A stretch of 64,000 nt of DNA from Botryllus schlosseri (Eukaryota), in NCBI GenBank assembly GCA_051294905.1, contig CM119383.1:5270001-5334000 (forward strand), read 5' to 3'. The position numbers and the translations under genes were made by a program. This document shows, piece by piece, positions 432-62,537 of the stretch. Under the pieces are notes generated by a model, which worked only from the letters and a program-made list of their open reading frames with translations, searched no databases and had not been told where the DNA came from. Each line of letters starts with the position of its first letter. Within the stretch, counting starts at the first letter, position 1.

Positions 432-3400
432 CAACATCAAGTGATTTACTGGCGGATGCTGTTGAAGGAACGGTGCAATTCCATCGATTGGTTCGCATTT
501 GGTGTTTACATTCTTCCAATCCAGTCTGCGCTCCAGACGACACGAAAGTCATGTGGTCGTTATACCGACGGCATAATGGCCGCTGAGTTCTTGACAGCCC
601 CATCAGTGAACTGCATTTCACCGACTTTTCTTCCGATAAGGATAGGTTACTGTGTGCGAGGGTCCTGAAATTATAATCATATCGGTATATGGCGTATTGC
701 TGTAGTGTAGATGAAATATCCGATAAAAGATATGGTTCATTGGAAACTTGCCCATCAGGGTATTGGACTCAATCAACTATGCATTTCAAGTCAACTGATC
801 ATTACAGAAACAGAAACTGCACTGAACTGCGTTGTTTACGCTCCCAGAATTACCGAAATATGTAAGCCTTCAGCCATACATCTGACATGGATAGTCAGCG
901 GCGTGGACAGGGCGAAAAAGCGATCGTTAAGACCACATATTATGTGCCCACTGCCCAATCTGTGACGTCAGGTCGTTGTTGAAAATCTTTCGACGCACTA
1001 TTTTTGACCCCCCTTCCCAAATTTTTATTTTGGCTACGCTTATGTGGGGAAGCCATATTGTATTGTTCCAATTGATCTGATTTTACCTATAGCAGATTTA
1101 TTAGTTGTATGTAAGTAAAACCAGAGAAATTTGTATTGACTCCATTTTTCAATTCAGATGCTATCATTCTTTCGCTTCCACCTTACCAAGGGCTTTCGAT
1201 GTTATGCCGTTAAACATGTGCAGTAGGGCTGTTCAAAAATAACTTTTTTTTCCCGATTCAAGCCGGTCACCTCTTAAATCGTCAGGTTGCAGTTTAAAAC
1301 CTTGCTCACCAAATTTCACTCGATTCCAACCAGTAAAGGCCTCCGCAGATCCAATTAAAATTTTTAATTTATTATGGAAAATTAAAAAAAAAATTCCAAA
1401 TTTTTCTGCCAACCCCATGAAATTGTTGAGTTGTCTTCAAAGACGTTGCAAAACAAATTTGAGTCAATTCCGTCCAGTAGAAGCGGAGTTATGTGAGTTT
1501 TTCGATGATATTTCTCGGATTATCCTTGATTGGTGGATAATCCGCGATTTATCAACGAAAAACTCACATAACTCCGCTTCTACTGGTCGGAATTGACTCA
1601 AATTTGTTTTGCAACGTCTTTGAAGACACCTCAACAATTTCATGGGGTTGGCAGAAAAATTTGGAAAATTTTTTTTTTAATTTTCCATAATAAATTAAAA
1701 ATTCTAATTGGATCTGCGGAGGCCTTTACTGGTTGGAATCGAGTGAAATTTGGTGAGCAAGGTTTTAAACTGCAACCTGACGATTTAAGAGGTGACCGGC
1801 TTGAATCGGGGAAAAAAAGGTATTTTTGAACAGCCCTAATGTGCAGGCTGTAGTTATTTCAATGTATCATATAGTTACTTTTAATTGCTACAAAATTGTT
1901 AGGTATCGGCTCGAGGGGAGAATAGCAGCTTATAAAGATCATAGCAGGCTTTTACAAATAGGTGATTATAGCAAACTGGATACACGGAGGCTGTAGTTTA
2001 AAATCCAGATTATCTGCATCTAAGTAGCTATTTATACAGCGTATTTCGTATAATATCGCGTTCAAGGTAAAATGACGTAAAATCAAACTAAGAAGCGTGT
2101 CGCTGTGACTTTCACTGGCGAGGGTGTCAATGTGGTCTGAATTGAATTAACACTGATTGCTGGAAACGTCCAAATGGGTTGAAATTATTCTATCCTACTT
2201 ATAATAGCTCATTACTCACGTAGAGGATGACCCATGCAGAGCAATATTAGGATTAGGATTAGGGCTGGACACAATGATTCGAGTAATTGAATCTGAATCG
2301 AGTATTAATTTTATTGATTCGAGTCGAGTAGTAACAGACGATTCTTTCGATTCGAGTACTGAAATTATACGCTCCTCGCCGCTGAAAGTTAATTCATCAA
2401 CAAGAATTACAGTTTCGATACTAATTTTCACTGTTGAAGCCTTGAAACCTTGATTGGCCGGATCGTAGCATACGAACCGTAAAGTACAAAGCTACGAATG
2501 TTACTGGAAATAGCGCATTTCCAAAATCATGATCATCCAACAACATTGTTACAAAGTGCAATGGAATCGGTATGGTCGAAAAAATACCAAAGTATCTTTA
2601 ACGTGACGGATAACAGGCCGCATTATGTTCTCTGTGGTCGCATAAAAGGTATATATTTGAACTTGGACAATGGACATATTACATTCTGTTATGAAATCAT
2701 AATGAGTGATACTCGATTACTCGACTCGAAGCATATTACGTGATTCAGGATCGAATCACTCAGGGACTCGATTTTGCCCAGCCCTAGATATGATGTTATG
2801 GGCAAAGTATAGAATGTAAACATGTAACATGTTAACATTCTATAGGCAAATCTTACAATCATTGATCAAGAAATATGACATAAAAGTGCTCGTATCATGA
2901 GGCACATTCTTTTCCAGCCTAGTGCCGAACCCACATAGCTTCACTCTATATTGGCGTTGGCGATTATGCATGTGATGGATTATTTCGCAATTGAATGCAG
3001 GATGACAAGGCGTTGCAGTTGCGTTAAGCGAGCCTTGAATTTTTCTAATCCAAGGATCGCCATAACTGCATTGTTGACAGATTCAACCTTCAGAAAATAC
3101 CGACCGTAACGGATTGGTGTCTTTCACACAGTTTTGAATTCAGGAGATCAAGATATTTCAAATTCTATAAACACGCTAGAAATTCCCATGTCCCTCAGTA
3201 TGTATATTAATAAATATATCTAACTATGGCCGGTAGCACTCTCAGATCCACCCTAGATTTCACTGTGGGTTTAAATATAATCTACCGTAATCCCCAAAGA
3301 AGTCTGCCGCGTATCGCACCGAACAAATGCAGTATAATCGGCATGATCTACCCCAACATCGTGGGCAAGAACAGGTATTTCGAAGGATCGAAACTTGAAG

Positions 3401-6308
3401 TTATCGCCGCGGAATTGATGCTATATCTAGCATGCCACAATTCACATATGACAGACTACGTTACATTTCCGCATCGCCACACAACATCTGGTGAATTTAG
3501 TGTTACGTCGAAAATAGGCGCGACTTTTTAAATACTACCCTACCACCAACGTCGGAGTTCCCAATACATGAATACTTATGCGTATTGCATACGCTATCGA
3601 AGTGTGAAATTGATAAGTTAATACCTCGCCTACTGGGGTCCGCATATAGCCTACCTCATGAGCGTATAACGTATGGGGATTATCTCCTTACCAGACCAAG
3701 TGGCTCAGCGATTAGCCCCATGCTACTAATAGCCAGAACAAATGCCGATGCTAATTCTAAATATAAAATCCTCTATTAATCTGCGAGAAATTATATTTTA
3801 CAAGTGTCAAAGCATGAGATGAATATTACAAAATGAACAGGGAGACAAATGTAGTCCTGGTTAAATATATTTTTGGTCTGTTTATGACAGTGGCCGGAAA
3901 CGCTTTTCGTCGAAGGAACCATGTTTATCCTATATTTTCAAGTGTCAATGTCAGTCCGCTGTGACGTCACAATTAAAGACTCGTGACGTCATGGCTAAAA
4001 CAAACAATAAAAACAAGGGTCATATTTTAAACGTGTTCGTTTTAAATGGATCTTTGTTTTAAATGCAATCCTAGTTACACGACAGGCTGCAATAAATTTG
4101 AACAATTCAGATTCAGATCTACTGATAACAGTATAGCAGCAAGACATATTTTAGACAGTTTATTCCATTAGTAGAACACCAAGTTGGAAACCATTCTGTT
4201 TAAACGCCCGCTGTGACTTGACGTAGTGAAAGAGTATTTCTAAGAACCGCGATTCTGTTACATCAGCGGACAGAGGATAACTTCTCGGAAATGAAGTTGA
4301 CAAGGCAATCAACCTAGTGAATTCGCATAGCTGCATTGTCAGTAGGAAATCATCACTGGTTTAGACAAAGTAATTGCGCTGCTGGAAATAGCTGGGTATA
4401 CAACGGCCAAAGACTTCAACTTTTGATACATCACCATTAAACTGACAGCGGTAGGGTATAGTTGTCATTATCTTACCGCATGAAGGTCACAGTGGAAAAT
4501 CATGCACCATACACGATAAAAATTTTGAAAACGCAGGATCGGTTGGATCAGCGCTCCTTTGTTCGTGCGGTAGTGTTCTGCCTCGCAGTGTGAGATTATA
4601 TGGGTCAATTACAGGTCAATGTAGGGCAAAGAGTTGTATAACTCGGTACCCAAAAACAACGTGCGTCGTCTATGAGCGCGCGGGTCAACGCATGATGAGC
4701 ATTTCGCTTGTTCCGAGTTAAGCGGCCCTCGAACTTCTATAGTAATTTCCGTCCGACAAAATATACTATCTATATGTTTTCATCGCATTACCCTCTGCTA
4801 TGAGTGCAAACTCGCTACGATCTGCTTATCAGGTATTAAGTAGGTTTATGTTCCAACCAGGGACAGGTGAACAACGCAAACTCTTTTGGTGTGAAGGACA
4901 GTGCTGTCACTAATTGGTGTGTTGAAAATCCGGCTGTTGCGAGTATATAGTTATACGGTTATACCCCAATCAGAGCTGGACTCTTGGAAACAACGCCAAG
5001 CCAATTATATCAACGTACGTTTGCAGTATTCAGTCCGAATTAAACAAAATATAGTGATTTATGCATAAAAACTGAGCATGACGAACCACGCGAAATGTAA
5101 ATCAGTAAAAGGACTGATCGCTGTGGCATTTATCAGGCCGGAAAAGTATCGCAGCGATGCCGGATTTCACACGCGGATGTGAGAATGCCCTCGGCGGTAA
5201 AAGTGACAAAACGATTGTTTGGGGGTCACGGCATAGCGGGGTGCCAAGAAGATCAAATATTACGGTGCGACACCCGTGAACGTACGTGTGGAGCGAAACC
5301 CAATTAAACCATAAACACCGTCAACCAGCTTAGTAAAAGACTTGAGAATGTTGTATATTAGCTTCCCAATCACAATTTCTACCGCTATGACGGGTGTTAC
5401 TTTCTTATCACGGGAAAGGCTTTGCATAAATAATCTTATTCCATTACTCAGCCACGAAATGGTTTCCCAATATTTTTGGTGTACATAAGCAAATAGAGAG
5501 TAAGTAAATTCTCAATTTGCCGAGGCGATGGCTACTAAAGGCCATTTATGAAGCGGGTCGGTGGTAAAATATCTTAATGTTTCTTCAGAAGTCTGTAAAG
5601 GACTTAATAGCGGTAGTCAACCGTAACTTGAACCCTTCACCCCGAAAAGTACTGGTGCCCATATTAAGACTATTTCATGTATGTACTAAACAATATCCGT
5701 CGCGATATGAGTTTGAGTCATATACACACCAAACCCCAGTGAATCTTGTAACGTACAAGTCATCGCTACATACTGTATTCCAACCTGTTTACCGTCATAC
5801 ACACCTGAGGCGTAAGTGATTCTGTCTATAATTAAATGATATTCCGATTTGTTATGGCGTGAATTTACGCCGGAGAAGTCATGTTTTCAATGTTGCATAA
5901 TCGTGTGCGTCTGCAGCAAAAGTAATTGGTTGCAACGTCCATGAAACAGGCAGATATAGCTAAGTGTACACAATTTCCATCAAATTTACGAGGTAATTAA
6001 TTTAGTAATCGCTAATCAGATAAATATGATAGACAAGCATTCGTGGACAAAATATTCACACTCCCATATGCGTCTATCGTCAGAAACAAAAGGGCCCGTA
6101 TGTTATGTAGGTTTCATGTCATCTGCACTAGAAAACTTTTGAACGATAATGTTGCCGAAAAGTGGCGCGGATCTGACCTGATTTCACGACACATAAAGGC
6201 TGTTAGAGTTCATTAAATATCGCTCAATACTTACCACAGTTGTCCATAAGTACTGCAAGGCAACAGCGCAATAGCAAATAATCCAGTGATAGCGTAGAAA
6301 TGAGTCAT
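432..6308 (-). CDS. Wnt5: Wnt5-like gene A, 5' part only: exon 1 6308..6235, exon 2 664..432; remaining exons lie outside the window (<1)
   Basis: Exon 1 encodes the signal peptide MTHFYAITGLFAIALLPCSTYGQL-W and ends TG|GTAAGT. Exon 2 starts after TTTCAG and reads W-TLAHSNLSLSEEKSVKCSSLMGLSRTQRPLCRRYNDHMTFVSSGAQTGLEECKHQMRTNRWNCT...DVG, ending G|GTGAG. Intron phases (2 and 1) match genes B-D. The C..GLS..Q..LC..Y.DHM...GA.TG..EC..Q...RWNC pattern is Wnt5-type. Subfamily call is less certain because the gene is partial and divergent. Confidence 0.8.
1224..1838. mobile_element. hAT-type foldback MITE, a 615-bp near-perfect palindrome in intron 1 of gene A
   Basis: Ends are TAGGGCTGTTCAAAAAT and ATTTTTGAACAGCCCTA. 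Arms of ~300 bp are reverse complements around a 9-nt loop (1526-1534). Identical 8-bp flanks ATGTGCAG at 1216-1223 and 1839-1846. Confidence 0.9.
2260..2786. mobile_element. Older hAT-type MITE with GATTCGAGT/ACTCGA subterminal repeats
   Basis: TIRs TAGGGCTGG...CCAGCCCTA, with clustered TCGAGT/ACTCGA motifs near both ends. Flanking 8-mers match only 5/8 (ATTAGGAT vs GATATGAT). Confidence 0.6.
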
Positions 6309-10133: not shown

Positions 10134-10488
10134 CATAGTGTCCTATATGGTGTCGACGCAACAATGCTGTCTGGCGAAACGAGAGAGTAGCTCAAGAGAA
10201 AAAGAGCCAGACAGCATTGTTCAGCATTGTTGCGTCCCAATCCCAATCTCCATAACAATCAAAAATTCGAGGCTGATTGTGGGAGTTCCAGGGCCACGGA
10301 ATAAAATTTATATTTTCGTAATCAGTGCAGAGTCAGCTTTCGATTGATACCCGTTTTACCAAATTTAATGCTCGGAAAGTCGGTCAAAAATGACCGTCAA
10401 ATTGCCTGTAGCCAAATGAAAATTGTGACGTGTACAATTTCATTGAGGCGTGAGATTTGCCTGTGTCGACACCATATAGGACACTATG
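10134..10488. mobile_element. 355-bp MITE, internally deleted relative of the 42861-44966 foldback element (P-superfamily-like)
   Basis: 24-bp TIRs CATAGTGTCCTATATGGTGTCGAC. 7-bp TSD GTTTCAT at 10127-10133 and 10489-10495. The body aligns by eye with 43118-43160 and 44698-44966. Confidence 0.88.
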
Positions 10489-11458: not shown

Positions 11459-11885
11459 CAGAGATGAGCATGGATTAGGATTAGGTTTTGAAAAAACAGG
11501 ATTTGTAAAATTTTGTCGGATTTGGATTGGATTTGGACTAGACATATTTTTCAGAACGGATTAGGATTTGGATTGGATTTACATATTTTCTGGGAGATTG
11601 AAATGTCGTGTGGCGAATGGCGACAAACTTTATTCAGATCAGTTATTAATGTACTTATGGTTACTAAGTTATCTTGAACCAAGTGAATCGTTACTTGTGA
11701 AAGAAAATTTTCGAATCCCTCCATTGCATAAATTAGTATTTTTTCTAAATTTCCAGTTGGAATCGGATTAGGATTGGACATGGACTTGAATATGAAAAAG
11801 TTATGGATTAGGATATGGATTTGGATTTGAAGGTTTGGATTTGGATTGGATTAGGACATAGAAATTTCAAATTCGCTCATCTCTG
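11459..11885. mobile_element. hAT-type MITE with GGATT(A/T)G arrays
   Basis: TIRs CAGAGATGAGC...GCTCATCTCTG. 8-bp TSD GTATCCAT at 11451-11458 and 11886-11893. Many GGATTAG/GGATTTG/GGATTGG repeats near both ends. Confidence 0.88.
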
Positions 11886-14031: not shown

Positions 14032-14598
14032 CAGGGTTGTAACCAAGTCACAAGGCTCCGAGTCACAAGTCAATCTCACTTTTATATTTTTGACTCGAGT
14101 CAAGTCGAGTCATTTTCAATTCCCACCGAGTCAAGTCCAAGTCCAAGTCAGCGAACAGAGGATCGAGTCCGAGTCATGGTATTATGACTCGAGTCCGAGT
14201 CCAAGTCATTGTGTTGACTGCTCAGTTTCCAGTTAAGGTCTTCCTAAACCTACTTTTTGACCTCTGTTTGGTGATATTGAATGGTTCGCATTTATAATAT
14301 ATCAATTTTCCTCACTTTTAGCAGTTTCTGGTCGCATTTTCAAGCACCAGTACCAACAAACGAAATCCCAATAGTGTGTTGGCTTCGAAATTACAATGAA
14401 ATGTCGGTCTTCGCCGTCTGAATCTCGAGTCATTGACTTGCTTCGAGTCATGCGCAATGACTCGAGTCCAAGTCGAGTCAATACACAGATTGACTCGAGT
14501 CGAGTCGAGTCATTTCCGTATTTTGAGAAAATGACTCGAGTCGAGTCGAGTCATCCGAAAATCGTGACTCGAGTCTGACTCGAGTCATTACAACCCTG
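14032..14598. mobile_element. hAT-type MITE with GACTCGAGTC palindromic subterminal arrays
   Basis: TIRs CAGGGTTGTAA...TTACAACCCTG. 8-bp TSD ATTTCTAC at 14024-14031 and 14599-14606. Numerous GACTCGAGTC/CGAGTC/CAAGTC units at both ends. Confidence 0.9.
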
Positions 14599-14887: not shown

Positions 14888-15201
14888 CAACGGTTCCAAC
14901 CTTTTTTTAGACACGCCCCCTTTTATGATAGTGAAAAGTTTCACGCCCCCCTTTTCGTCATATTGCAAAATCCAACCGGGATGCTAGCAACCCCAACAGA
15001 TTGTTTGATGGAATGGAAGGTTATGACTGTTAATGAGAGAATTCAAAAATATGAAATTCGGTCTATATATAGAGAAACACGCGTGATATGGCGGTAAATC
15101 GCGCAGAGCGCGAAACATTTCAGTTGACCGCTTCTTCGCGCCCCCTTCAGATGCTTTCAACCCCCCTAAGGGTTGCGCGCCCCCCGGGTTGAGAGCCACT
15201 G
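14888..15201 (+). mobile_element. hAT/Charlie-type MITE, same family as 30624-30913
   Basis: Ends CAACGGTTCCAAC...GGTTGAGAGCCACTG. Shares internal blocks with 30624-30913 (GGAAGGTTATGACTGTT.ATGAGAGAATTC; GGTAAATCGCGC.GAGCGCGAAA). No clean TSD. Confidence 0.7.
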
Positions 15202-18200: not shown

Positions 18201-20204
18201 ATATCTCCGTCCTCGATCAAATACCTGCGACAGTTTTGTTATCCACCAGCGCAACCGACAAAAAACATCAAATATCAATTTCACGGGGATTGGCCCTCTG
18301 GTGCCGTGCGAGTTTACTGCCCGCCCCCACCCATTACGTGGCGCGCTGATGGAAAGGCACTGGGAAAGAAGATCTGGATAGAAGACGTCAACAGCGCTAT
18401 TCACCGCATCAATTACATCTCTCGCACGCACGATAGCGCTTCATCATTTGCCAGCGCGACTAATTAATATCGACGACGTATCTATTGCGTGCTATGCGAT
18501 AACCGCACCGCTCGCATGGGAATATATTCAAAGCTCAATCAATCATTTGTCGACCGGTGAAGTTATCAGGAATGCCTATCCCGTGTATAGGAACCAGGCT
18601 AAATTCCTGGATGGGAAAATCGACGAAATTACGTCGAATTTAGCATATCCCCAATGTTATGTACATATATACCGTCGGTTTTCCGATTCTATTTCATAAG
18701 ACGCGTTCCGGGCAGCTGTGAGCAAATACTATTTTTAGAAATAGGGATATTGGGTATTTGGAGAAATATAATGATTGTAAACTGAATTTTTCTCGAAAAT
18801 AGAAATATGAGATTCGAGAGATGAAATTTATACGATTGGTAGTTTTGTTGACTTGCACGCATCGTGAACAATCCAAATTAACGGGAAAGTCAGCATAACT
18901 AATCGGTGGAAACTGCAACGCAGGCGTGTAGGTTGTTATTATTCACCGCTGCAAACGCCTGCCGGATGGTAACCTTCGATTATGGTTTGTGTTTCCGGCT
19001 ATTTGCCACTATGCACTTCCGATCTAATAACCAATTGTGCTCGGGAGTCCGCGATAAACAACAAAGGTGTTATATTCACGCCGGGAACACGTACAGCAAA
19101 CACCCTGGACACCCTCAACTGATAAATCGAGATTATTGACTTCTGACATGAGCGATTGTCGAGAATTCTAAATTGTATATTATCAATTGTTGGTCGTAAA
19201 GTCTTTTCACAGTTCGTGACTTTACAAGTAGACTTTGCGTCATGAATAAATGCCAGATTTCTTTTATCCTTCATTTTTTTTCTGCATCGAACTTCGAGAC
19301 CCGGGTTTGAAGTGAAGCGAAGCGAATCAAAACTTTGATGTAAAAGTGTCTTCAATGTACTCAAATCTTCAGTCGCGCTGCGAGTAGCATTTAAGTTAGG
19401 GGGCACAATAGACTTCTGTATATCGAGGCAACTTGAGAGTTTGATACATTTTTGGTCTCTGATTCAAGTCCGTTTTTCAATCAGGAAATATTTTCGATGA
19501 ATAATTGTTATATCCGAGGATGCGATCTATGATTGATGAATTCGGCTTTTGCAATTCAATAATATTTGACTAATTCGACTATTTTGTGAATATCATCGAC
19601 TTCTTCAATACCGTAAGTTACCATACGAAAACTTGTAATAGCGAGTCATTGTATTTACGAGCCAATATGAAAAAAAAATGATAATTTAGTTGCAGAATAG
19701 AATTTTAGACGATTAATTCGTTATGTTTTCGCACTTTGTTGTGTATTTCGCACGACACATACTTGAGACGGTTGTAAACTTGCATCGTCAACAGTGCTTG
19801 ATTTGATCGCAGGCCTTTCTGCCGAAAAATGTGTTTGACACAATAGCTTACGCGATTACTTGTTAGAGTACTTAGACACATAAATTTGGATTACAAAAAG
19901 CTTCGCAAAACACGCGTTCCTCCAAATTCAGTCACTTTCTCATCGTTCCGGGAAAGTGAAATCGCGCCGATAATTACAGTTTACGAATATCTAAAGTGGA
20001 AAAATAACTTGTAGCGCTATTGTCGAGAACGAAAGAAAATAGCAGGTTGCGTGCATTTGCGACATGGGAGCATTAGGTCGAGGTTTATTAAACACACCGC
20101 CCGGCATTTATAACCCGCCGGTGGCGACATTGAAAACTCCAACAGCAACCTGCAATTATAAATGGAAGGACTGCTCTCGAAATCACGCATAAATTACAGC
20201 AAAC

Positions 20205-30245: not shown

Positions 30246-31174
30246 CGGGGGTCGCCAACTCAAAACGGGTCGCGCGCCACTTTTCAAATTTCGTAGCGGC
30301 CGCGGGCCGCATGAATTCAATATCGCTATCAAACGGGCAACCACGTTTTAAAAATCAGTCAGTACAACGCTGTGCTACCTAGCATAGGCGATTGGCATAG
30401 TGACCACTCATGCAGTAATACTTCATTAGGGGAATACAAATACAATATAAAATCATTGCCATAAATATTATTTTATTTTGGACTCTGCGTTGTGCAGTGT
30501 GCACGATACCTGAAAACGCTTTTCAGCAACTGAGGAATCGATATTGTGGCTAGCGAGATACGTTCGTTATATGCTGAAAGGCCCTCTCCACGTAAAGCTT
30601 GATCTTGTGAGGAAGCCCTAAGCCGGTGGTTCTCAAACTTTTTTGGACACGGTCCCCTTTATGATACTGAAAAATTTCGCGCCTCCCTTATCGTCATATC
30701 AGAAAATGCAACTAGAATACCAGCAATCCCAACGGATAGTTAGATGGCATGGAAGGTTATGACTGTTGATGAGAGAATTCTATAATATGAATTCCGGATT
30801 ACACACCAAGCAATAACTATGAACTAGAGGTAAATCGCGCGGAGCGCGAAAAAAATCAGTTGACCGCAGCTCCACGCCCTCTTCAGATGCTTACCCCAGT
30901 TTGGGAACCACTACCCTAGGCCGTTTTCCAAGCGTCTCGGTTTTGCCAATCTTTGGGTTAATGCCCGTCAAGACAATATGGCCATTCATATCAGCTGATT
31001 CTCTCTCGATATAATGCTGTTGCCAAAGACTACAACAATATGTTGAAACTGTAGTCAATTTTAGTTTTTCAAATGGTTTTAGCTTTCTTCCGAAATCTCA
31101 AATCAAGTCGCGGGCTGCAAAATATGATCTCACGGGCCGCAGGCGGCCCGCGGGCCGCGTGTTGTTGACCCCTG
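30246..31174. mobile_element. hAT/Charlie-type non-autonomous element containing a nested MITE
   Basis: Ends CGGGGGTCGCCAAC...GTTGTTGACCCCTG. 8-bp TSD TACTAATG at 30238-30245 and 31175-31182. GCGGGCCGC subterminal motifs at both ends. Confidence 0.85.
30624..30913 (+). mobile_element. hAT/Charlie-type MITE nested in 30246-31174
   Basis: Ends CGGTGGTTCTCAAAC...GTTTGGGAACCACTA. Flanks CCCTAAGC and CCCTAGGC (7/8 match). Homologous to 14888-15201. Confidence 0.8.
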
Positions 31175-42200: not shown

Positions 42201-45200
42201 GATACGACTTCAGATATCTACTTAATAATGAAATCGTATTCAAGTGGGACTATTGGAAGAGTGCCCAGAATATATGTGCGTACCCAGTCTGGTTGTAGAC
42301 CTTTTGGTCGCGGTTTCGTAGTGCAGCCACACTCCAAATGTCCGGTCTGACATGCTTTTGTGACAGCGTGCACTACACCGGCTGAGGCAACGGCGTAAGC
42401 GAAAGCGATTTCTTTACTTCCTGAAATGTAGGTTAGCAATATTTTACCACCCAAAACAGTTAGATTTGAACGGTGTCTATTTTGGATATTGTAACTACGG
42501 AAATGACTAAACCAGACACACGTTGCTAGATGGGTTTTCACTACAGTGCTATCGACAATTTTATCGGTTATATTCTGTTTTCAGTGGTACTTCTCAATTA
42601 CACTCCATAAAACGGGAAACTTGTTCACTTCCTAATGCCGTTGTCAATTGCACAGTCATGGGGGGCCTGAGTAATAACAAGGGGTCGTAAAAATAACTCC
42701 CTAATCGCCCGATGACATCAGAACGCTTCATCAAAATTATGTCAGTGTCGACTCGTAACGATCAACACGGATTCGTAGAAGAATTGGTGTAACCATTACT
42801 GAGATAAACGGTTACTATTTCGTATCGACGTTATCATTCGTATTTTAGGGAGAATGTGGGCATAGTGTCCTATATGGTGTCGACACAAGCAAATCGCACG
42901 GTTCAATGAAATTGTATCACGTCACAGTTTCCATTTGGCTACAGGCAATTTGACGGTGATTTTTGACCGACTTGCCGAGCGTTAAATTTGATGAATCGGG
43001 TATCAATCGAAAGCTGACGCTGTGCTGCTTGCGAAAATATAAATTTTATTCCGCTCATGGCCCTGGAACCCCCACAATCTGCCGCAAATTATTCATTGTC
43101 TAGTAGATTGGGAGTGTGACGCAACAATGATGTCTGGCGAAACGTGAAACTAGCTCAAGAGCAAGGATGCGGCCGAGCGGCGAGAGTGGGATCAGCTGAC
43201 GTGACGGCAATAGCAGTGTGCAAACGCGCCACAGAGAAACGCTGCGCTGTTGATACCTTTTCTATGCGTTTCGGTACAAGCGAGCACACACCAGCCTTTC
43301 CTTGACTTGTAAGGGTAGAACTGGGTCCACGGAATGTATTAGGGCCCTACCAATTTTCGCGCAATATCCTTCAGCTGATAGGGATATGTAGGCTACATCT
43401 AAGTAGTCTACATTGGATATGTCAGATTATTATGATATCGATTGCCTTAGCCCGCTTGTTGCGTAGGGCTCCAGAGACACGTCGCGCTGTTGATGGTGGG
43501 TGTCGATACTTTCTATAGTCACTTTTATGGTTAAGTGTGAGCAAGGAGCATTGAGCATGAGCATACATTACAAGCTTTTATTTGATCCGTATGGGTAGGA
43601 CTTGGTCCGCGAATGCAGCAGGTAAAATGTTGATTGTTGAATAAAGTTTAACAGCAGGAGTGTCGAATTATACTGGTATCGCTGTCCGGATTCAATCCGT
43701 TACTAGAAAGCTTGCGGGCCATACCTGCCAAATGATTCCAAAATGTTACCACCAAATTCATACCTTTGTTTTTCACTGGAATATATCTCATATCACTATA
43801 AACGTTGACGTTGGAATTTGGTTTAGCATTTTTCAATCACCAAATAGTTTTTTTGAATGCCGGGGACCTTTTGCGTCAAAAGTAATACAGTGGTATCACA
43901 GATATTTGAATTATATTCATTCTGTAGCCTGTATATATATTCCTAATGTAACTTACGTAAAACGGATTTGCAGTATTTTTTTCGCATCTGTGAATAACTG
44001 AATGTCCATTCGGCCCAACAGAGTTTGCACTTTTTCGCCTTCTCGGAATTTGGCCTCAAGGTCACCGACGTGGTGCTTATGGGGACTAGAGTGAAAACTC
44101 AACACTGTAGTTGTATTACTACAATATGATATATTTACATTATCTAAATTTGCTGTCTTGAGTGAATCTTATTACTTGAAAGTATATTTTTCTTACTAGA
44201 AATATCTTTAACAGCTGAAGGATTGCGCGAAAATTGGTAGGAACCAAATACATTCTGTGGACCCAGTTCTACCATTACAAGTCAAGGAAAGGCTGGTGTG
44301 TGCTCGCTTTTAGCGAGGCGCTTAGAAAAAGTATCAACAGCGCCACGCATCTCTGGAGCCCTACGCAACAAGCGGGCTAAGGCAATCGATATCATAATAA
44401 TCTGACATATCCAATGTAGACTACTTAGATGTAGCCTACATATCTCTATCAGCTGAAGGATATTGCGCGAAAATTAGTAGGGCCCTAATACATTCCGTGG
44501 ACCCAGTTCTACCCTTACAAGTCAAGGAAAGGCTGGTGTGTGCTCGCTTGTACCGAAACGCATAGAAAAGGTATCAACAGCGCAGCGTTTCTCTGTGGCG
44601 CGTTTGCACACTGCTATTGCCGCGACGACAGCTGATCCCACTCTCGCCGCTCGGCCGCATCCTTGCTCTTGAGCTAGTTTCACGTTTCGCCAGACATCAT
44701 TGTTGCGTCACACTGCCAATCTACTAGACAATGAATAATTTGCGGCAGATTGTGGGGGTTCCAGGGCCATGAGCGGAATAAAATTTATATTTTCGCAAGC
44801 AGCACAGCGTCAGCTTTCGATTGATACCCGATTCATCAAATTTAATGCTCGGCAAGTCGGTCAAAAATCACCGTCAAATTGCCCGTAGCCAAATGGAAAC
44901 TGTGACGTGATACAATTTCATTGAACCGTGCGATTTGCTTGTGTCGACACCATGTAGGACACTATGATGTGGGTTTCGTTTTGTTGATTCATGCAATTGT
45001 GACGTATAATATCGTGACAGTTCAGATTTAGGGATATGATCCATTTTAACGATCGTGCCAATGGCGTAACATCTACGAAGTTATTTACCTTGATACGAAC
45101 AGTTTCAGTTGTTGTTTTCGCAATGAAGGTAACATATTTGTTTTTCCAACCTGTCCCAGATTATAGTTCGTTTCTTCAGTAAATACAAGGCCATAGAAAG

Positions 45201-48200
45201 CACACAGTAACGTTATATTATGATTCTTCAACAGTATATCCGAGAATTGCGATATTCCGTATCATAATACTTATATATGCCGTCATGCTATACCGCCGAA
45301 CCCAGGATATTCCAAATTTCAAAATTGGTTACCAATGAACTTAATGCCTTCAAATTTTGCCCAGTTATCTTCGTCAATCATGCCACGTTTGCACATCAAT
45401 CCGTGGAGAAATGTGATAAATCATGGAAATGCGACAAGGTCGTGTGCACTGTGCACTTGTACTGATAACCCTCGATTGAGGGACGTACGACGCGCCGGAC
45501 GAAATGACGCATACACAGATACACTTACCTATGTCAAGAACATTTCCAAAAACGCTGTTGTCTTTCACCGTGGAGCAGTTCCATCGATGGTCACTGAACT
45601 GGTGTTGGCATTCGCCTATTCCGTTAAGAGCACCTTCTCGTACGAATTCCATATGGTTGTGGTATCTCTTACAGAGCGCCTTTTGGTTCCTCGAAAATAC
45701 TCCATCGGCGTCGCACATCTCGGTGCGATAGGCGGTCATGTTTGTGAGAGGCGCACGGGGCGATGCTAGCGACCTGTAGCGCGATAAACAACACTTTTCT
45801 TGAAAGACTGCACACCGGAATTCAATTTTAATTTTGTGAATAAAATCGAATGCATTTAGTATAAATTTGTCTACTTAATAAGACGAACCGCTACGGAATT
45901 CCATGGGGGTTTAACAGGTCAATACAGGTTTAGTAATGCTAGCCGATGCCGCAATTGTGACTTGTGTGGGCAAAATTCAGCGGTTTAGCAAATATTGTTT
46001 TCATCTGTTGTCTTGCATATCATGATGTTTGAAGTCTCCACTGACCAACGCGTAGGTAACACTACATTTCCAAACTTCGGTGTTGTCACATCAAATAGTT
46101 TTATTGAATCGCACGCCTTCATGTCTCCCTGTATTCTTTACTTTCCCATTCCCGGAATTCGCATTTGTTCATGTGATGTTTTGTAATATTCGTCATTTGC
46201 TGTATTTCCTCATTATTCCCGCGCGCATATAACGTTTATACCTCTCGAATATGTTGAAAAAATCGTCCGGGATTACATCAATAATTTATTGAGATTTTTC
46301 GATTTCTTGCCGGGATCTGCCGACTCGCGCCGCGTCTGATGTCAGCACTGCGGTTTTAGATTGAAATTTAAACCATTTATCTTCAACGCTGATATACTTC
46401 ACTTCCTTGCTCAGTAATTCCCCAAGGTAAACAATTTTGTTGCTTCCTGTTCATCGTGAAGTCGATGTCGTGAGCTCGTTATACATTTTGAAGACCACCA
46501 CCAGTGCCGCGGGTTGTCTAAAAGTCAGTTCAATGCCTCATACGGTTCAAACGTTTGCAGTAAAATAGATTTCCAGAATGTTTTCGTCCGTTCCTCGACC
46601 GGAGACGCCAGAAAACTTTTAATCCACGAAACGTGATAAATACCTTATGCGCCGTGCTTCGACGCTATTGAAACTTGCCGGATTCGGAGTACCGTATGCA
46701 CCACACGAAACGCATCGATTACATGTTTACATTAAGGACATGTTATTTTAGCGTGAGCCTGATACATTTGCTTTGCAACATCTTGTACACCTGGCGTGTG
46801 ACACAGCCCGATGAATACACCCCCATCTCATAAATGGCGAGTCATCAGACTGGAAGCTATTTACGTCTTAATATAATTACAAACTACACATATTTGCCAA
46901 CAGTTTCTACAAAAGGCTATTTAATATGCCGGTGTTTACTACATTCCCGTCTTCCGCTCTGTGACAGTACCTTCAATTTAACAACCCGTGATTATGACGT
47001 TTAAGTCGTTTGTTTTTCGTCACAAAAGGCGTGCCGTCATCGTTTGCAGCCGCTATCTACTCTGTGTCACTTCCGCTGTTTTCGTCGGCCGTATTTCATC
47101 AAAATTTCCCCAATCACCGAAGACTTTAAAGTTATATTGACAAGGCTTTATGTACTCATAGTCAATAGTATATCTTTACATTCTTTTACCAAAGTTTGGC
47201 CGTCCAGATTTCGGAGTATTTGGACAACTCCACTTGGAGTCAATTGAATGTTTAAAAAAATGTACCTCCATGACAATCTCGACCTCTCGGTGAGTGATGA
47301 ACACCACGCGTGATTGCGGAATGATTTATGGTTTTCGCGACATCCAGATCAAACACGATCGGGAGTCGGATACAAATGATCACTGAAACGTTTTATGATC
47401 CTTTTAAAACGTGAGCAGGACGGACTTTTGTCGCGGACAGAATGTTGGTTTCTCCTGCAAAACTATGCGGACCTGTGTACGCTCGCTTTTCAAAAGTATC
47501 CGTTGGTACAGCTGCAAGTCGCGCATTTTTTTGCGGCCTTTTCGTACCCGATTTACGCAATCTGCTATCAGTATGATTAACGATTGTTGCGCCTCGCTGT
47601 ATAATTGAATCCAAGCACTGCAGAATTCTCTATGCATAATCGCAACGTGAGTATATAAACCTGTAACGCTGGTTCCGCTGCGAAGACACTAGGTTAAATC
47701 ATGACCAGATTAGTCCACAGCGTACATTTTTTGTAATTAAGTGCATGAGCGCACGGGAAGCACCCGCCCCACGACGGGTATACCATGGATACGATTTATT
47801 TCCTGATTGTCAGTTACTCTGAGTTTTGCGCCGCCACTCCCCCGATTGTTGCCCAGTTGCACTGCGGCCTGGCACACCATCCTTAGACCAAACTACTTCC
47901 ATGCCCTATCGATGTTATCACTAATATTTAATTAAGTGCTTGAATGTGGCACTGATACATCAAACACTTAGCTAAGGGTTTTCTTGGTTTCGATTCGGAT
48001 ATTTTACCTCTAACATTCCGTTCTGTGTTATACTTTTTTCGTAACCCCAGCAAGCTCCCGAGGAATGTAAATTTGCTTTCCTGAAACGCGTGTTACACCG
48101 AATTATATACAATATTGGCCGAGCCATTACTGAATACCGCCCGGCTATTGTAGCAAATACTGATGACCCAGCTTGAATACATATGTTTTCACTTGAGTGA

Positions 48201-48373
48201 AACTATTGACAGAGCCCCCTCGGCAGTAGCGTGTTTGAATAATTGGTCCTCTTTGCATTGAGCTCAACCATCGTAATTCAAAAGACTTACCACCAATGTG
48301 CGGACGCTTCTTCGACCATGATAACCATTACAAGCGTAAAAACAATCGCAACTTTGCTAGATCTCGTATCCAT
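39262..48373 (-). CDS. Wnt5: Wnt5-like gene C, 361 aa: complement(join(48373..48291,45773..45529,42420..42284,42172..42020,39729..39262))
   Basis: GT-AG introns (2517, 3108, 111, 2290 nt) at the same positions and phases as gene B; exons sum to 1086 nt. Signal MDTRSSKVAIVFTLVMVIMVEEASAHWW, then [54 protein letters not shown]. 24 Cys. Confidence 0.93.
42861..44966. mobile_element. 2.1-kb foldback element with ~634-bp TIRs and 7-bp TSD (P-superfamily/Galileo-like, non-autonomous) in intron 2 of gene C
   Basis: 42861-43494 is the reverse complement of 44333-44966 with roughly a dozen substitutions. Termini are CATAGTG...CACTATG. TSD ATGTGGG at 42854-42860 and 44967-44973. A ~238-bp-period internal duplication (44212-44343 vs 44450-44583). 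No transposase ORF. Confidence 0.9.
46245..46735 (-). pseudogene. Possible decayed coding fragment with an RRM-like motif (PARP14/NMI-like) in intron 1 of gene C
   Basis: A single frame with several stops reads KFSGVSGRGTDENILEIYFTANV*TV*GIELTFRQPAALVVVFK, resembling the VSG.....DE..LELYFEN....G..E.......A.V.F pattern. Recognised by eye only. Confidence 0.3.
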
Positions 48374-56114: not shown

Positions 56115-56120
56115 TTTATT
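56115..56120 (-). other. Candidate polyadenylation signal of gene D
   Basis: TTTATT on + (AATAAA on -), ~610 nt after the stop codon. Confidence 0.3.
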
Positions 56121-56728: not shown

Positions 56729-59700
56729 TCAAAGGCAAATATGCTTGACAACAGTCCGTTTACATTTTTCGCATCGCACCCTGCAGCACCATTGAAATTT
56801 GCAGCGACACTTCTCGACAACCTCCACCTTCCTGCTTTCGAAGCCTCTGCCGCAGCACAAGAGTCCACAGCCGTTCGGATCGGTTGAGTCCTTATCGCAC
56901 TCTCGACCCGTCGTCCCTGGCACGCCTGTTCTCGGATTTGGTCTGCAGTAGTCTGGCGAGGCTTCGATGTATATAAGATCCGTCGATGTGGGACTACCTT
57001 TCCTTGGCCTCCTCGGTCGCAAATGTCCTTTTGTGTTTCTTTTCATTTCGAATGCCTTGGCGTGATTTTCGCGTAGTGTTTTGCCAACTTTTTTGAAATC
57101 TGGCACCTGGGACCAGCATGTTTTCATGCTGCACGATCCAGATAGTCCATTGCAGCGACAAGACGGTTTTGTCCCTCTAACGACCACCTAAACATTGACA
57201 CGAAATGTTTATCAACTTTCTTATACGTTTCTCAAAACATGAAATGCATGCTCTTACAATATGATGCTGTAATTCACCTGATTGTCCCATCAAATCTCTT
57301 TGGACATTATAGGCGTGTAGTCACATCAATTGAGGAGTGCCTTGGGTTTAAATTGAGGGGGCGGGGTGCTAAAACACGCCGGCTACGCGAGTCGCTATCA
57401 CGCACATGCGGATTTGTGACTATATCATTGAAATGAAAAATCACAAAAGTATACAATATCCCTTCCGTCGATCGAAATACAACATTGTGCTAGGTTAAGA
57501 CCTCCTCTTTCGCAAGATTATCTTTGCCGGTCTATTTGCAGTAGGGGTGTATTTTGTCAATGTCCTCACTCGTCCGCATCTTCTGAAAGACCGTGACTAA
57601 GTGGACTTAACGTAAAGCCGTTAATCCTACTTTGGCACTCTGGTTCACTTGGGTTAGTATCTTAAAGCTTTGCTCAAGAATGCTTTGCGACAGGAAGTTA
57701 TTAAAACCTTTCCGTATTCCTATGACGAGAACGGCATTCAAATATCACGTGTATTTCTTTACTTGTCCAGCTTCTCTATAGTACTGAAAATCAGATCGGA
57801 AACACTCAGATTTTCACGCCGCACTGCCTTCCACTTGTGTTGAGGAAGTGGATGCTGGCAAACGTATACGATGACGTATCACTTGAAAGAAGTCATCGAC
57901 TTTGTTTTGATAGATTTAGAACCTCGTATCCTTCATTCATTCAACTCAACAGGTTGCATTATAATGATATTAGCGGTGCAGTTTCACGGGTTATAATAGT
58001 TTCAAGGAGTTCCTCGTATATAGCGAATACTGGTAGTGACGATCAATGTTGCTACCGAAGTGGTCTTGTTACGAGGTACACTCAAATCATCGCGAGGGAA
58101 CAATTTGTATAACTTCCACCCCAGAAAATTATAGCACTGCCTTATTGGAAATGATGACACAATCCAGATGTTCGAGTTCTTTTCATGACGAATGACCAAT
58201 TGACCATGCTTAACATTCAATTTGGCACCATTTTGTTTCTTGTTTCTGTGTTGTCGCGTTATCTGCATATGGTACGAAGCTAGTGAGACCCTCAGTGTCC
58301 CACAAATATTTATGAATCACAAAGGACGTTCAAGTTTTTTTAAGTGAATGTGTGTTTTGTTCATGTCAATCCTCGGCTGCCGATCTCAATCGCCAAACGT
58401 ATTGTAGGACGCAAAGCTAGAATAAAGTCGAGCGTCTGAGACGCAACTTGGCAAGTCTCAAATTCCACGAAATGCGAAATGTATTATCTCAATCTAATAC
58501 AGCGTGAGTAAATGTATGCTCATTGCTCAGAATTCTGGGCTATAATTTTCTACTAATCAATGGAAGTAGATTTTCTTAATACTGAGACTGTAATTGTTTT
58601 TTCGAGATCATAATAATAGAACAGAAAAACGGAAAGATTAAGTTTCAGAATCTTAGCCACTTTGATATTGGCTACAGGCACCACGTATGTTTAAATGTTT
58701 GGAATGCCCGATTCTCCAGCATATTACGTCAGCACGGAATGAGTACGTAACGGCCTATTTCTGCTGGATAGATCTGATCTGTCAACTTCACGTCATAGTA
58801 GTCCGATAAAAGCGATGACAGTCGCCATGGCTCTGAAATCAACCAAGAACTACTATTACAACAAGTACGGTTATAATTGACGTGTGTTATGACTGCGTGA
58901 CTTATTGGCAAGGGGTTCATATCCTCCGTAAAAGATTGGCGATGTCACACATCCGCAAGACGGGTTAGAAGTCGACGCAAGTTAGTGGATATCTTTCTGT
59001 AAAGCGTTGTATTAATATACTGCGAATTCACATCCCCTAAATTACATGATGAAGGGCGCATTCATCAGTTCTTACCATTCTTCCAGCTTCGTTGTTGTGG
59101 AGATTCATCGCCTTTCTTGCTCTATCTTTGCTGCGTTTTGGTGACAGGTTGTCCCGTTCGATTGCGTCCACAAATTCTTTGGCAAAGCCGTAGGCATATT
59201 TCGTGTTATCGCCACATCCACCCCACTCCTAAACAAATCGTGATCATGGCAGAATATATACGTACACATATAAAGCGGCGGGGACGTGAGATGAGCAGAA
59301 ATTGTCGATTAACCCTTGCAGGGGTGTTCAACTTTTCTGCTATTACCGGCAGCATTTCGCTTATATATACTGTGTACGGCCTCATTTCAGCGGACAGTCG
59401 CAATGGCCCACCTGGACGCCAAATACCCATGCTATATCAACAAATGGAGTACTTCGCCTCGTAGAAAGCCCTCGCAGTGTTCTATGCCATTACTGTTTTC
59501 TTGTGAAATATCTTGCGCATGAAAGTTTGTAATGTAGAAGTAGAACGCCGCCACAGACTTACTACTCGAACCGAAATCGCGAGAATACATGCTGTGGAAG
59601 ATAGGAATCGTCGTCTAGTCGCGCCGAGCGCGAAAAATTTTCGACTTCGTGAATAAATATCGTATATATACTGTATAATATTGGTAGTTGCGCAAATGCG

Positions 59701-62537
59701 CAATGCACATATCACTATAAAATACTCTCCTCTCTCAGCCCACGGATCAGATTTACATGTGGAGCTGATGGAGCGGTGTCTTTTTTGAATTTCGGATTCA
59801 AAATTTATGATGAATGAATCCTATTCGGGTTGCTATTTTCACTTTGTTGCATGTCGTCATTTCTGGACATCCCTTCAAGAACCGTCGGTCAAGTCAAAAT
59901 TTATATTGGACTCGCACAAACGTACCAGTAAAACATTCATTCGTGAGACACACCTGATTCCAAATTTGTATTTCATTATTCGGATAGCAATTACCGGGCC
60001 TACGATAATTACCTATGCGGCTAGAAATTGTATACGGTGGGTATCAGATTGCAAGTACACTACTATATTAAAAATAAAAAATGTAATCAACCTAAATCAC
60101 GGCAACCACGAAAATTTTTTTTAGTTGAATTATTATAATCTCTCAAAACTTAAGGATTCAATTCTTTTGCCCTTCGCCAACACACGCTAATTTAACTAAT
60201 GTGTAGATTGACGCATAATTTTTGTTTCAATGCCGCAGGTCGGCCACCCCTGTCTTATAGCGTGGACAGTGAATAGATATAGTAGTCAAATTTGGTAAAC
60301 TTACCCAGTCTCGATCCAATCCTTCCGGGCGCTCATTCGCACTGCACCCGCACATTGGGAAGGCATCGGTCTTGCACGCTCTCGCTACCTCGTGGACAAC
60401 ACCGGCCGATGCGATTGCGTAGGCGAAAGCTACTTCTTTGCTGCCTGTTATGCATGTATTCGTCATAACAATTCGGTAATCTCCATTTCCAAATCATGAT
60501 CCAGAACCTACCTATCTCAAGAACCTTCCCGAACACGGTACTATCTTCCACAGTCGAGCAATTCCACCGGTGTGACTTAAACTGACTTTGACACTCGTTA
60601 ATTCCAGTCATTGCCCCTTTCCGCACGTACGTCATGTGACTGTAATATCTCTTGCACAAAGCTTTCTGATTCCTTGATAAGCCTTTCATGATGTCGCACA
60701 GCGTGATCAGCTCAGCACCGAGAGCCTCGACGTCATTGCGTTGTGCAAATGACCTGAAATTACATGGTAAGCCTTGAAGATAAAAAAAAATTGTCTACGT
60801 TCTCTATCGTCACGGTATATGTGCGAAGCATAGATATACCAAATTAGTTAACAGAATGTCAGAGCGAAGGAATGGAATACTGTGTTTATAATTACCACCA
60901 AGATAACCTGTATATAAATTATGATACCTGATTTATGGTGTGATTGGTAAATTATCATATATTCGATCAAATTCCTTCTGATGTATAGCTATAATTCGCA
61001 CAAACACCTTCTAAAGCTTCTGGACAGCTTGTCGCACATATTAGTCGAAAGTATAAAGCTGCTTTTAGCAAAGAAAAATCGAAATTTTGTGGCGTTAACA
61101 CATTTCGAAAATTCCGCCTCTTTTGGCGGCGAATTAACTATTTTAATCTACTTAAAGTTTGATGATGGGACTCATTATATGAAACGCACAGCACGATGCT
61201 TTCTGACTTACGTATGCTTATAATTTTTGTATGGATTTCGCTCGCAAATAACGGTACTGGATGATCTGTCACTTGGAACCGCACATATAAAATAGCAAGC
61301 CTGTAGTTTTGTCACACGCACGACCCTGTTGCTGACGATAACATGTGGCGAAGCACTATTGCAAAAACCCCGGCTTCAACGGGTAGGCCTGGAGTTTGGT
61401 TATTGCGACCGAACATTTCAGATGTCAAAAATTGCATTGTTGAAATGTGCAAAATGGTTGGGAGAGCACGGACTAAAATGCCAACACGTGCATGGTGCAT
61501 TATGGTAGTCATTAACCGGTTCTACACAATTTTATCAATATCACGACCTCAAAAGCGAGTCCAAATTTACGTGTACATGACTTCCCCTCGTGATCAATCG
61601 ATGCGAATTTGTATTTGAGTCACACTGACCCCGCTTTGAAGTGAGCGAATATCGTGTTGCATTTGCTCTTGCACTTTGTCACGGCGAGCCGTAAACTATC
61701 CAGTTTACGACATCATATTTCAGCGATTATCGAAGACCTTTTGCTAGTGACTTGATCGTGAATGATGCACTGATGTAATCGAAAGTAATTGTATGATAAG
61801 TGTTCTTATGCCGCGCGACTTCGGGTTGAATATGCCAAGTATGGTTGTTTAGAGCTGTGCTTGTCGACAGATATCATTTTCTTAATACACTAACTCGCGT
61901 GAGTCGAATATTGAGGCGCACGATCGCAGTTCATAATGCCTGATAAAATGTGTTTTGAGGTTAAGTTATTATGAAGGCACAATTCAGAAGCTTATGTCTA
62001 CACGGAGCGACATTAATCAAACGTATAGGTCGTCGAAAAGATGGATTTATCCATGTTTCGATGGTTGTGCGCATCACGCATTGCGTTGGATACGGCGTCA
62101 CGTTAAATACAAATGTGACATTGACATGAAACAGCTCTGAACGACACAGTTACATTTTTTTGTAAATTACAAGTATGCAACATGTATGGCCCAAGCACTC
62201 AGTTTCTCTAGTCGACATTCAATATTTACCGCGGGCATGTATACTTGTATAGGCGTAACCTTGATGAATTTTGCTAGGGTCACAATGTACAGTGTGCACG
62301 TCGAAAATCTTGGGATAAGCGATCATTCGCTGCACCTACCATACAAGACAGCGGAAATGAGTTAACATTGAAAACGATATACGTAATAAATACGTTGGCA
62401 GATACACCTCAATAGTACCGCTATAGTATTGTAGAAATAAGCGATACTTACCACCAATGACAGTTAACCTCGTCCGTTGTAAGAAGCAATGTCGACACTA
62501 CCAATAGAACTCTCAAATTCGACGAAAGATAGTACAT
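56729..62537 (-). CDS. Wnt5: Wnt5-like gene D, 359 aa: complement(join(62537..62452,60753..60512,60444..60305,59228..59076,57187..56729))
   Basis: GT-AG introns (1698, 67, 1076, 1888 nt) with the same positions and phases as B and C; exons sum to 1080 nt. Signal [29 protein letters not shown], then [62 protein letters not shown]. 24 Cys in the mature region. Confidence 0.93.

Follow-up and report, generated by a model that had tools for sequence, protein, structure and literature searches.

The question raised by this locus is whether the Wnt-like exons scattered over 64 kb of Botryllus schlosseri DNA (the window, that is, the whole stretch of 64,000 nucleotides analyzed here) represent a set of old Wnt5 paralogs that have been kept intact, and whether the individual copies still encode equivalent ligands. 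Among non-vertebrate chordates, tandem expansion of Wnt5 is the only known amplification of a Wnt subfamily, and speculation has tied it to coloniality and regeneration. The results indicate, with a probability of about 0.9, that the window, from B. schlosseri or a very near member of its species complex, holds a tandem Wnt5 cluster of the stolidobranch type. It consists of four genes, each with its own transcript, whose products are secreted ligands of the Wnt5 class with cysteine knots and lipid modification.

Six-frame translation together with tblastn, in which the exons of gene B served as queries, locates Wnt exons at only four places in the window, and models of the four genes, termed A, B, C, and D, were built by hand from these results. 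The genes span positions 432–62537 and are contiguous within 62 kb, and the models bear out the claim of a preliminary description of the sequence that four intact-looking Wnt genes lie in the order −,+,−,−, in the case of A as the 5′ part that falls within the window. Gene A (432–6308, minus strand; identified from its model, the Pfam wnt match of exon 2, the maximum-likelihood (ML) tree, and a published match) comprises exon 1 (6235–6308), with an ATG, a hydrophobic leader ending in ..GQLW, and a codon split as TG/G, and exon 2 (432–664; gene model, Pfam wnt, and PDB match), with a phase 2 acceptor and a phase 1 donor. Exon 3 of A is absent from the remaining 431 bases at the left edge of the window, and exons 3–5 lie to the left of it. 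The other three genes are complete, and each is identified from its model, its position in the tree, and a published match, to which mapped primers are added for C. Gene B (20342–22958, plus strand; 352 amino acids, 24 Cys) has its exons at 20342–20409, 20478–20716, 21077–21216, 21347–21499 (51 amino acids), and 22500–22958 (including the stop codon), all assigned from the gene model and, for exons 2, 4, and 5, from Pfam wnt, with a PDB match for exon 5. Gene C (39262–48373, minus strand; 361 amino acids, 24 Cys) has exons at 48291–48373, 45529–45773, 42284–42420 (lacking one residue relative to B and D), 42020–42172 (51 amino acids), and 39262–39729 (including the stop codon), again from the model, with Pfam wnt for exons 2 and 5 and primer mapping for exons 2, 3, and 5. 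Gene D (56729–62537, minus strand; 359 amino acids) has a putative signal-peptide exon 1 at 62452–62537, followed by exons at 60512–60753, 60305–60444, 59076–59228 (51 amino acids), and 56729–57187 (including the stop codon), from the model and, for exons 2 and 5, from Pfam wnt.

The structure of the genes is shared. All introns of A–D are bounded by GT...AG, and their phases of 2, 1, 0, and 0 occur at homologous positions in the alignment, so that the identical intron positions and phases noted earlier are upheld. Exon 1 of each gene encodes a Met and then a hydrophobic stretch (Kyte-Doolittle 2.6–3.1), its junction in A, B, and D having been inferred from the HWW/S or QLW/T motif, the phase, the GT-AG boundaries, and transcript identifiers listed by others. 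The exon pieces of A–D all match the Pfam wnt family PF00110 above the gathering cut-off of 20.3 bits, with scores of 49–62 bits for the exon 2 pieces of A–D and 185–193 bits for the exon 5 pieces. All 24 columns that contain Cys in 28 of 28 reference Wnt5 proteins also contain Cys in B, C, and D. The earlier count of 24 Cys per protein therefore holds for B and C but not for D, which has 25, the additional one being in its leader (NCHWW); the cysteine framework of A was judged over its first 102 residues. The identities in exon 4 counted by hand in the preliminary description (B/C 41/51, B/D 37/51, C/D 37/51) proved exact on recount, and full-length protein identities are 60.6% for B/C, 57.1% for B/D, and 56.9% for C/D.

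The spaces between the genes were searched for anything else. The ten longest non-Wnt open frames in the window have no Pfam match below E = 0.05, tRNA and Rfam scans of the window found none, a Wnt5 HMM run over all six frames of the window detected nothing beyond the 17 Wnt exons, and in tblastx against three Wnt5 loci of Styela clava the Wnt exons alone were conserved, with no conserved non-Wnt element. These searches, all empty outside the Wnt exons, agree with the earlier statement that no other gene lies between the copies, although a gene consisting only of short, unconserved exons may still be present there. One candidate relic of an exon 2 (19753–19818, minus strand) was obtained by tblastn with E = 0.11, but it scored only E = 12 and 2.6 bits with the Wnt5 HMM and was dismissed as chance, leaving the window with no pseudogene of the Botrylloides type.

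To which subfamily the genes belong was addressed with an ML tree of 53 rows having Wnt1, 2b, 3, 4, 6, 7b, 11, and 16 as named outgroups. Support is 100/94 for the Wnt5 clade and 100/99 for the tunicate Wnt5 clade within it; B, C, and D fall in an eight-row stolidobranch Wnt5 clade (100/100), and in a second tree A and Styela P0164 group together (99/93) within the clade of Halocynthia WNT5 (100/99). With outgroups that leave aside Wnt8, Wnt9, Wnt10, and WntA, the ML trees thus bear out by sequence the proposed Wnt5 identity of all four genes, A included. Among solved structures, exon 2 of A is most similar to Wnt-5a (57.8 bits versus 46.8 for Wnt-3a), as is exon 5 of B (161.6 bits versus 135.6 for Wnt-3a, with Wnt8 41 bits below Wnt5a). 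Assignment of A to another Wnt subfamily, which would make the cluster a mixed one, might be suggested by its identity of only 30–34% to B, C, and D across its 102 residues and by its lack of the SVFG motif. Such an assignment is nevertheless highly improbable given the tree support and the PDB match, and given that the QLW leader end, YNDHM, CKHQM, and an S/P-rich segment one residue shorter are common to A, Styela P0164, and Halocynthia WNT5. A is moreover identical over the part in the window to Bsc_Wnt5b1 of Additional file 2 of Somorjai et al. (PMC6060547), the remainder of which, as far as retrieved, is itself a Wnt with the expected motifs. Gene A belongs to a separate and older paralog class (the Wnt5b1 or HrWnt-5 type) than B, C, and D, which represent the ‘Wnt5a’ class of Somorjai et al. 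(2018), and the four genes are accordingly not equivalent.

In protein collections the best representative match to exon 5 of B is 57% identical, a search for an exact copy of its open frame returned nothing, and no protein identical to those of the window occurs among the matches to Ciona or Styela Wnt5. The genes are nevertheless known. An alignment of Bsc_Wnt5b1, Wnt5a_3, Wnt5a_1, and Wnt5a_4 is given by Somorjai et al. (2018, Genome Biol 19:98, Additional file 2; PMC6060547), and these correspond to A, B, C, and D, respectively; both the genes and the type of expansion were thus published in 2018, in line with the earlier guess that a stolidobranch tandem Wnt5 expansion was already on record. 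A transcript is listed for each of the four in Table S1 of that paper. Counted by eye over the published sequences as far as retrieved, two residues differ between B and Bsc_Wnt5a_3, three between C and Bsc_Wnt5a_1, and eight between D and Bsc_Wnt5a_4. The retrieved Wnt5a_4 model begins in intron sequence and does not contain the putative signal-peptide exon, so that inclusion of exon 1 at 62452–62537 corrects the 5′ end of the D gene model. By sequence, C is also the “wnt5A” of Di Maio et al. (2015; PMC4499891): all four published wnt5A primers map to C only, and its spliced coding sequence predicts amplicons of 722 bp and 149 bp, exactly the published cDNA sizes. That gene was cloned from cDNA and has a specific in situ pattern in germline precursors (PMC4499891).

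Since B. schlosseri is highly polymorphic, and since the 2013 draft contains a second, near-identical B-type model, Wnt5a_2, without a listed transcript (PMC6060547) and absent from the window, the copies could in principle be uncollapsed haplotypes or assembly duplications of one or two genes. The divergence among the copies makes the chance of this practically negligible. YN00 and NG86 gave no dS because of saturation, and identity at four-fold degenerate sites was used instead; it is 26–35%, approximately random, while dN is 0.29–0.32. Coding DNA is only 62–63% and protein 57–61% identical between copies, nucleotide similarity is confined to exons, the introns are without similarity in sequence, and intron lengths and gene orientations differ. 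The haplotype reading is refuted for the four window genes by this divergence, the introns, and the orientations, as anticipated in the preliminary description, and survives only for the published Wnt5a_2. Saturated synonymous sites combined with retention of all 24 conserved Cys indicate old duplicates; the saturated dS, the dN of ∼0.3, and full open frames likewise confirm that they have been kept intact and are not recent copies. Of 102 near-invariant Wnt5 columns, moreover, only one is changed in B, five in C, and four in D. When the duplications took place is a further matter. An origin of B, C, and D by duplications confined to the Botryllus lineage, with their apparent orthology to Styela genes an artefact of the tree, is unlikely, even though the tree for the most part does not resolve relations inside the eight-row clade, D lacks a clear partner, and the ascidian Wnt5 tree was hard to interpret for Somorjai et al. 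as well (PMC6060547). The partner of B is Styela P0155 (98/88, and 94/87 in the second tree) and that of C is transcript P0158 (100/99), and forcing B, C, and D into a clade costs 31.6 lnL with AU p = 0.042, a marginal value for a group named after the tree had been seen. The great age of the copies follows from the saturated dS under either history.

Intactness of sequence leaves room for the reading that at least one of the copies, with C and D as the most plausible candidates, is decaying or non-signaling and intact in appearance only. Its evidence lies in two motifs. In C, GCGD is changed to GCRE, a change unique to C at two residues that are the same in all 28 other Wnt5 proteins compared, and Arg following the Cys of this motif is found in 0 of 211 other Wnts compared. 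In D, three positions of the acylation hairpin are altered (CKCHGV to CRCNGL), including a His kept in 316 of 318 Wnts. Decay is still very unlikely, because the open frames are full, all 24 Cys and the acylation-site Ser are retained, dN is ∼0.3 against saturated dS, transcripts are listed for both C and D, C was cloned from cDNA with a specific in situ pattern, and the His-to-Asn substitution of D is shared with Halocynthia Q8T8A8. The hairpin of B and C is CKCHGVSGSC, and the ten-residue hairpin of D likewise has Ser at the acylated position, acylation itself being predicted in all three. Both GCRE and CRCNGL recur in the independent published assembly, and reproducibility in two assemblies indicates that they are not sequencing errors. 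The hope that these paralog-specific changes were new was not fulfilled; they are already present in the 2018 sequences, although undiscussed in the text (PMC6060547). It is conceivable, though doubtful, that C and D are neofunctionalized ligands, with GCRE or CRCNGL affecting how the protein is acylated or exported or which receptor it engages. The Wnt5 signals from the cluster would in that case differ in function and be tied to colonial life, for instance to germline stem-cell migration and budding, and C and D would be more than expression-partitioned copies.

A cluster of old, constrained Wnt5 genes is the reading preferred here. The copies arose through old tandem duplications, the split between A and B/C/D being older than the divergence of Botryllus and Styela and the separation of B, C, and D from one another probably predating it as well, and all copies have since been under purifying selection. 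By analogy with Wnt5 in other animals, the conserved hairpin serine of each protein would be acylated by Porcupine, and the acylated proteins would be exported by Wntless; judging from subfamily membership, they may signal mainly through non-canonical pathways of the Frizzled/Ror/Ryk type (polarity, migration). The copies have probably been retained for use in different tissues or phases of the life cycle, as in the case of C in germline precursors, and the shared regulation and the sub- or neo-functionalization put forward in the preliminary description may also apply. Nothing categorical is added to the published picture, and the published gene set is confirmed; what is added is the contiguous 62-kb cluster, the corrected 5′ end of D, and two reproducible motif changes. 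These should be of use for paralog-specific probes, knock-downs, and single-cell read assignment in Botryllus.

Comparison with known systems places the cluster among those of other ascidians. In the 2013 draft of B. schlosseri the same four genes are scattered, with Wnt5a_1 and Wnt5b1 on chr12 and Wnt5a_3 and Wnt5a_4 on unplaced scaffolds (PMC6060547), whereas here they are contiguous. Botrylloides leachii and B. violaceus likewise have four tandem Wnt5 genes on one scaffold with similar exon-intron structure, but for Botrylloides a Wnt5 pseudogene is reported between Wnt5.1 and Wnt5.2 (PMC5882950, PMC10542563), whereas, comparing by description only, the Botryllus window has no Wnt relic. 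The ‘Wnt-5-like’ genes of Styela clava on OZ123520.1 (P0153, P0155, P0156, P0160, and P0164) comprise the same paralog classes: P0164 matches A, P0155 matches B, and C and D fall in the clade of P0153, P0155, and P0156. In Styela, P0164 lies tail to tail with a plus-strand gene of the Wnt5b2 type, P0160. In both species the b1-type gene is on the minus strand and the next gene is of the a-type and on the plus strand, and the proteins are 48–65% identical, but the Styela genes are larger (7.6–13.7 kb), and the distance from the b1-type gene to P0153 is ∼150 kb, compared with 14 kb from A to B. In Halocynthia roretzi, HrWnt-5 (WNT5_HALRO) is Wnt5b1 and HrWnt-5b (Q8T8A8) is Wnt5b2 (Table S1, PMC6060547); Botryllus is represented in the HrWnt-5 clade by A, with 39% identity over its 102 residues, although Halocynthia and Botryllus belong to different families, the Pyuridae and Styelidae. 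Vertebrate Wnt5a and Wnt5b are of the same subfamily and have the same cysteine pattern and acylation hairpin, at 47–53% identity, but that pair is unlinked and stems from whole-genome duplication, whereas the Botryllus copies are tandem duplicates of independent origin.

The window contains Wnt-like exons at just four places, as judged from translation in all six frames, from scanning for motifs and from tblastn with a single copy's exons as queries; it is free of N and has a G+C content of ∼41%. Exon boundaries were set by base-by-base reading, and first exons were recognized from an ATG and hydrophobic leader together with a GT donor in phase 2. Gene A lies on the minus strand (6235–6308, 432–664) and is truncated by the window edge past exon 2, exon 3 being absent from the 431 bases to the left of exon 2. 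Gene B lies on the plus strand (20342–20409, 20478–20716, 21077–21216, 21347–21499, 22500–22958), and genes C (48291–48373, 45529–45773, 42284–42420, 42020–42172, 39262–39729) and D (62452–62537, 60512–60753, 60305–60444, 59076–59228, 56729–57187) lie on the minus strand. All introns of these models are bounded by GT...AG. Their alignment positions and phases (2, 1, 0, 0) agree across copies, as the preliminary description had stated; the first intron follows HWW or QLW, the second splits the Gly of IG/S, the third follows DW and the fourth GRM. The open reading frames of B, C and D, which it had called complete, are stop-free over 352, 361 and 359 residues, and its exon 4 identities (41/51, 37/51 and 37/51) are exact on recount. 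Its figure of 24 Cys stands for the conserved residues of B, C and D, but the D frame contains 25 in total, with one extra in the leader. D has a second in-frame ATG 69 bases upstream of the start used in the model (62538–62606), and starting there would place 23 extra residues before the hydrophobic leader; the proximal ATG was preferred here, as it had been previously. B intron 1 (20410–20477) measures 68 bp and D intron 2 (60445–60511) 67 bp, whereas their counterparts elsewhere in the cluster span 1.7–5.6 kb and 0.36–3.1 kb, respectively, indicating that intron sizes have fully diverged between paralogs.

Every exon piece of A to D matches Pfam wnt, and the best solved-structure match for B exon 5 and A exon 2 is Wnt-5a, above Wnt-3a, Wnt-7a and Wnt-8. 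Homologues were collected with B exon 5 as query, from which the full-length match P0006 (Ciona savignyi Wnt5) was chosen, and then with P0006 and Styela clava Wnt-5-like protein P0164; outgroup clusters were named via cluster look-up. In the resulting maximum-likelihood tree (53 rows, LG+C20+F+G4, including named Wnt1, 2b, 3, 4, 6, 7b, 11 and 16), B, C and D fall inside a Wnt5 clade (support 100/94), as had been proposed. The tunicate Wnt5 clade (100/99) is split four ways, between the non-stolidobranch ascidians, a Styela P0160/Halocynthia Q8T8A8 (HrWnt-5b) group, a Styela P0164/Halocynthia WNT5 (HrWnt-5) group, and a clade of eight rows (100/100) in which B, C and D stand together with three copies from Styela and two transcripts. 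B is sister to Styela P0155 (98/88) and C to stolidobranch transcript P0158 (100/99), and D has no resolved partner inside the eight-row clade. A, placed by adding it as a partial row, pairs with P0164 (99/93) within the HrWnt-5 clade (100/99). A, P0164 and Halocynthia WNT5 have in common the QLW leader end, YNDHM and CKHQM, and in all three a Ser/Pro-rich segment, one residue shorter, replaces SVFGKV. These placements and common motifs indicate that all four genes are Wnt5 and that the paralog class of A is older than that of B, C and D. Two full-length stolidobranch Wnt5 transcripts are present in Logan SRR32906210 and SRR32906208 (L004, L005); they include P0158, which is orthologous to gene C and 70% identical to it.

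That the copies might be uncollapsed haplotypes, recent duplicates or products of recent gene conversion is rejected by their silent sites and by the extent of their similarity. Pairwise dN among B, C and D is 0.29–0.32, and dS is saturated beyond estimation; four-fold degenerate sites are 26–35% identical, approximately the expectation from base composition alone; and in self-comparison of the window, inter-copy similarity (67–73%) is restricted to exons. The earlier reading of old duplicates kept intact is thus upheld. In comparison with 28 other Wnt5 proteins, B, C and D lack none of the 24 conserved Cys and keep the acylated Ser, and of 102 near-invariant columns B alters 1, C 5 and D 4. 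A tree constrained to unite B, C and D is worse by 31.6 log-likelihood units (AU p = 0.042), which, because this group was chosen after inspection of the tree, weakly suggests that the duplications are older than the Botryllus–Styela split.

Tandem Wnt5 expansion is described in every stolidobranch examined (PMC6060547), and Botrylloides has four-gene Wnt5 clusters (PMC5882950, PMC10542563). A search of the PMC6060547 supplementary alignment with motifs peculiar to the window proteins identifies the window genes as its Botryllus schlosseri rows, bearing out the earlier suspicion that the expansion was already known. With differences counted by eye on the printed rows, A is identical to Bsc_Wnt5b1 over its in-window part, and B, C and D correspond to Bsc_Wnt5a_3, Bsc_Wnt5a_1 and Bsc_Wnt5a_4 with 2, 3 and 8 differences, respectively. 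Beyond that part, Bsc_Wnt5b1 shows the expected Wnt motifs in the accessible portion of the source (PMC6060547). Its Table S1 pairs every one of the four genes with a transcriptome contig, places 5a_1 and 5b1 on chr12 and 5a_3 and 5a_4 on unplaced scaffolds of the 2013 draft, and gives Wnt5a_1 as the gene called wnt5A by Di Maio et al. (2015), who report it in the gonadal blastema, in germline cells that are still immature (PMC4499891). Primer mapping independently agrees with this identification: all four wnt5A primers of that study map in the window to gene C alone with 0–1 mismatch. Their spans on the spliced C coding sequence, 722 bp and 149 bp, equal the published amplicon sizes, which supports the splicing of C exons 2 to 5 at the cDNA level; on genomic DNA the same pairs are separated by 6.2 kb and 3.2 kb. 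The finding is real and was correctly read in the preliminary description; locus, expansion and species were all known already.

The window adds contiguity: Wnt5b1(−), Wnt5a_3(+), Wnt5a_1(−) and Wnt5a_4(−) form one cluster, and the 2025 chromosome-level assembly paper makes no mention of Wnt5. The published Wnt5a_4 N-terminus consists of intron-derived residues (..NFFHLQGLPSNFR), its start mapping to D intron 60754–60800, where a TAG closes the frame in the window, so the published gene model is probably wrong at its 5′ end. The first exon of D, at 62452–62537, ends in the family-typical HWW/S. Wnt5a_2, a near-duplicate in the old draft for which Table S1 (PMC6060547) lists no transcript, has no counterpart in the window and may be an allele of Wnt5a_3.

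The genes are separated by 14.0 kb (A–B, head to head), 16.3 kb (B–C, tail to tail) and 8.4 kb (C–D, head to tail). Pfam gives no credible match for the ten longest non-Wnt open frames, tRNA and Rfam scans of the window return nothing, a Wnt5 HMM finds no fragment beyond the known exons, and tblastx against three Styela Wnt5 loci matches Wnt exons only. Within the limits of these methods the spacers hold no other gene, as previously described. Intron 1 of A contains a long perfect-hairpin, foldback-like repeat (1221–1841; 620 bp, matching its reverse complement at 95% identity). A 2.1-kb element in intron 2 of C (42861–44966), ending in 634-bp terminal inverted repeats (42861–43494 and 44333–44966, 98% identical), is probably a foldback-type transposon; partial copies (86–88% identity) lie in the A–B spacer at 10150–10488. 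Two spacers share a 265-bp direct repeat (14892–15156 and 30628–30892, 79% identity), a 134-bp palindrome lies at 14456–14589, and a (TGGATT)n microsatellite at 11554–11856 overlaps an Asn-Pro-repeat-rich open frame.

Two motif changes distinguish C and D. In C, GCGD is replaced by GCRE, Arg following that Cys in 0/211 Wnts compared; in D, CKCHGV is replaced by CRCNGL, His occupying that site in 316/318. Both substitutions are present in two independent assemblies and are therefore genuine. The locus carries four Wnt5 genes, all intact and constrained and each oriented separately. By analogy with their subfamily, the proteins would be secreted palmitoleoylated ligands with a predicted main role in non-canonical polarity and migration signalling. 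Their retention suggests that the copies may divide expression domains, of which one, germline precursors for gene C, is documented (PMC4499891). The shared regulation proposed earlier is possible for the head-to-head pair A/B.

In Styela clava (OZ123520.1, 8.808–8.835 Mb; L001, L003), the genes for P0160 (Wnt5b2-type, +) and P0164 (Wnt5b1-type, −) lie tail to tail with ∼4.5 kb between them, and the a-type gene P0153 (+) lies 150 kb beyond this pair. The tail-to-tail order of P0160 and P0164 predicts a Wnt5b2 gene directly to the left of the window.
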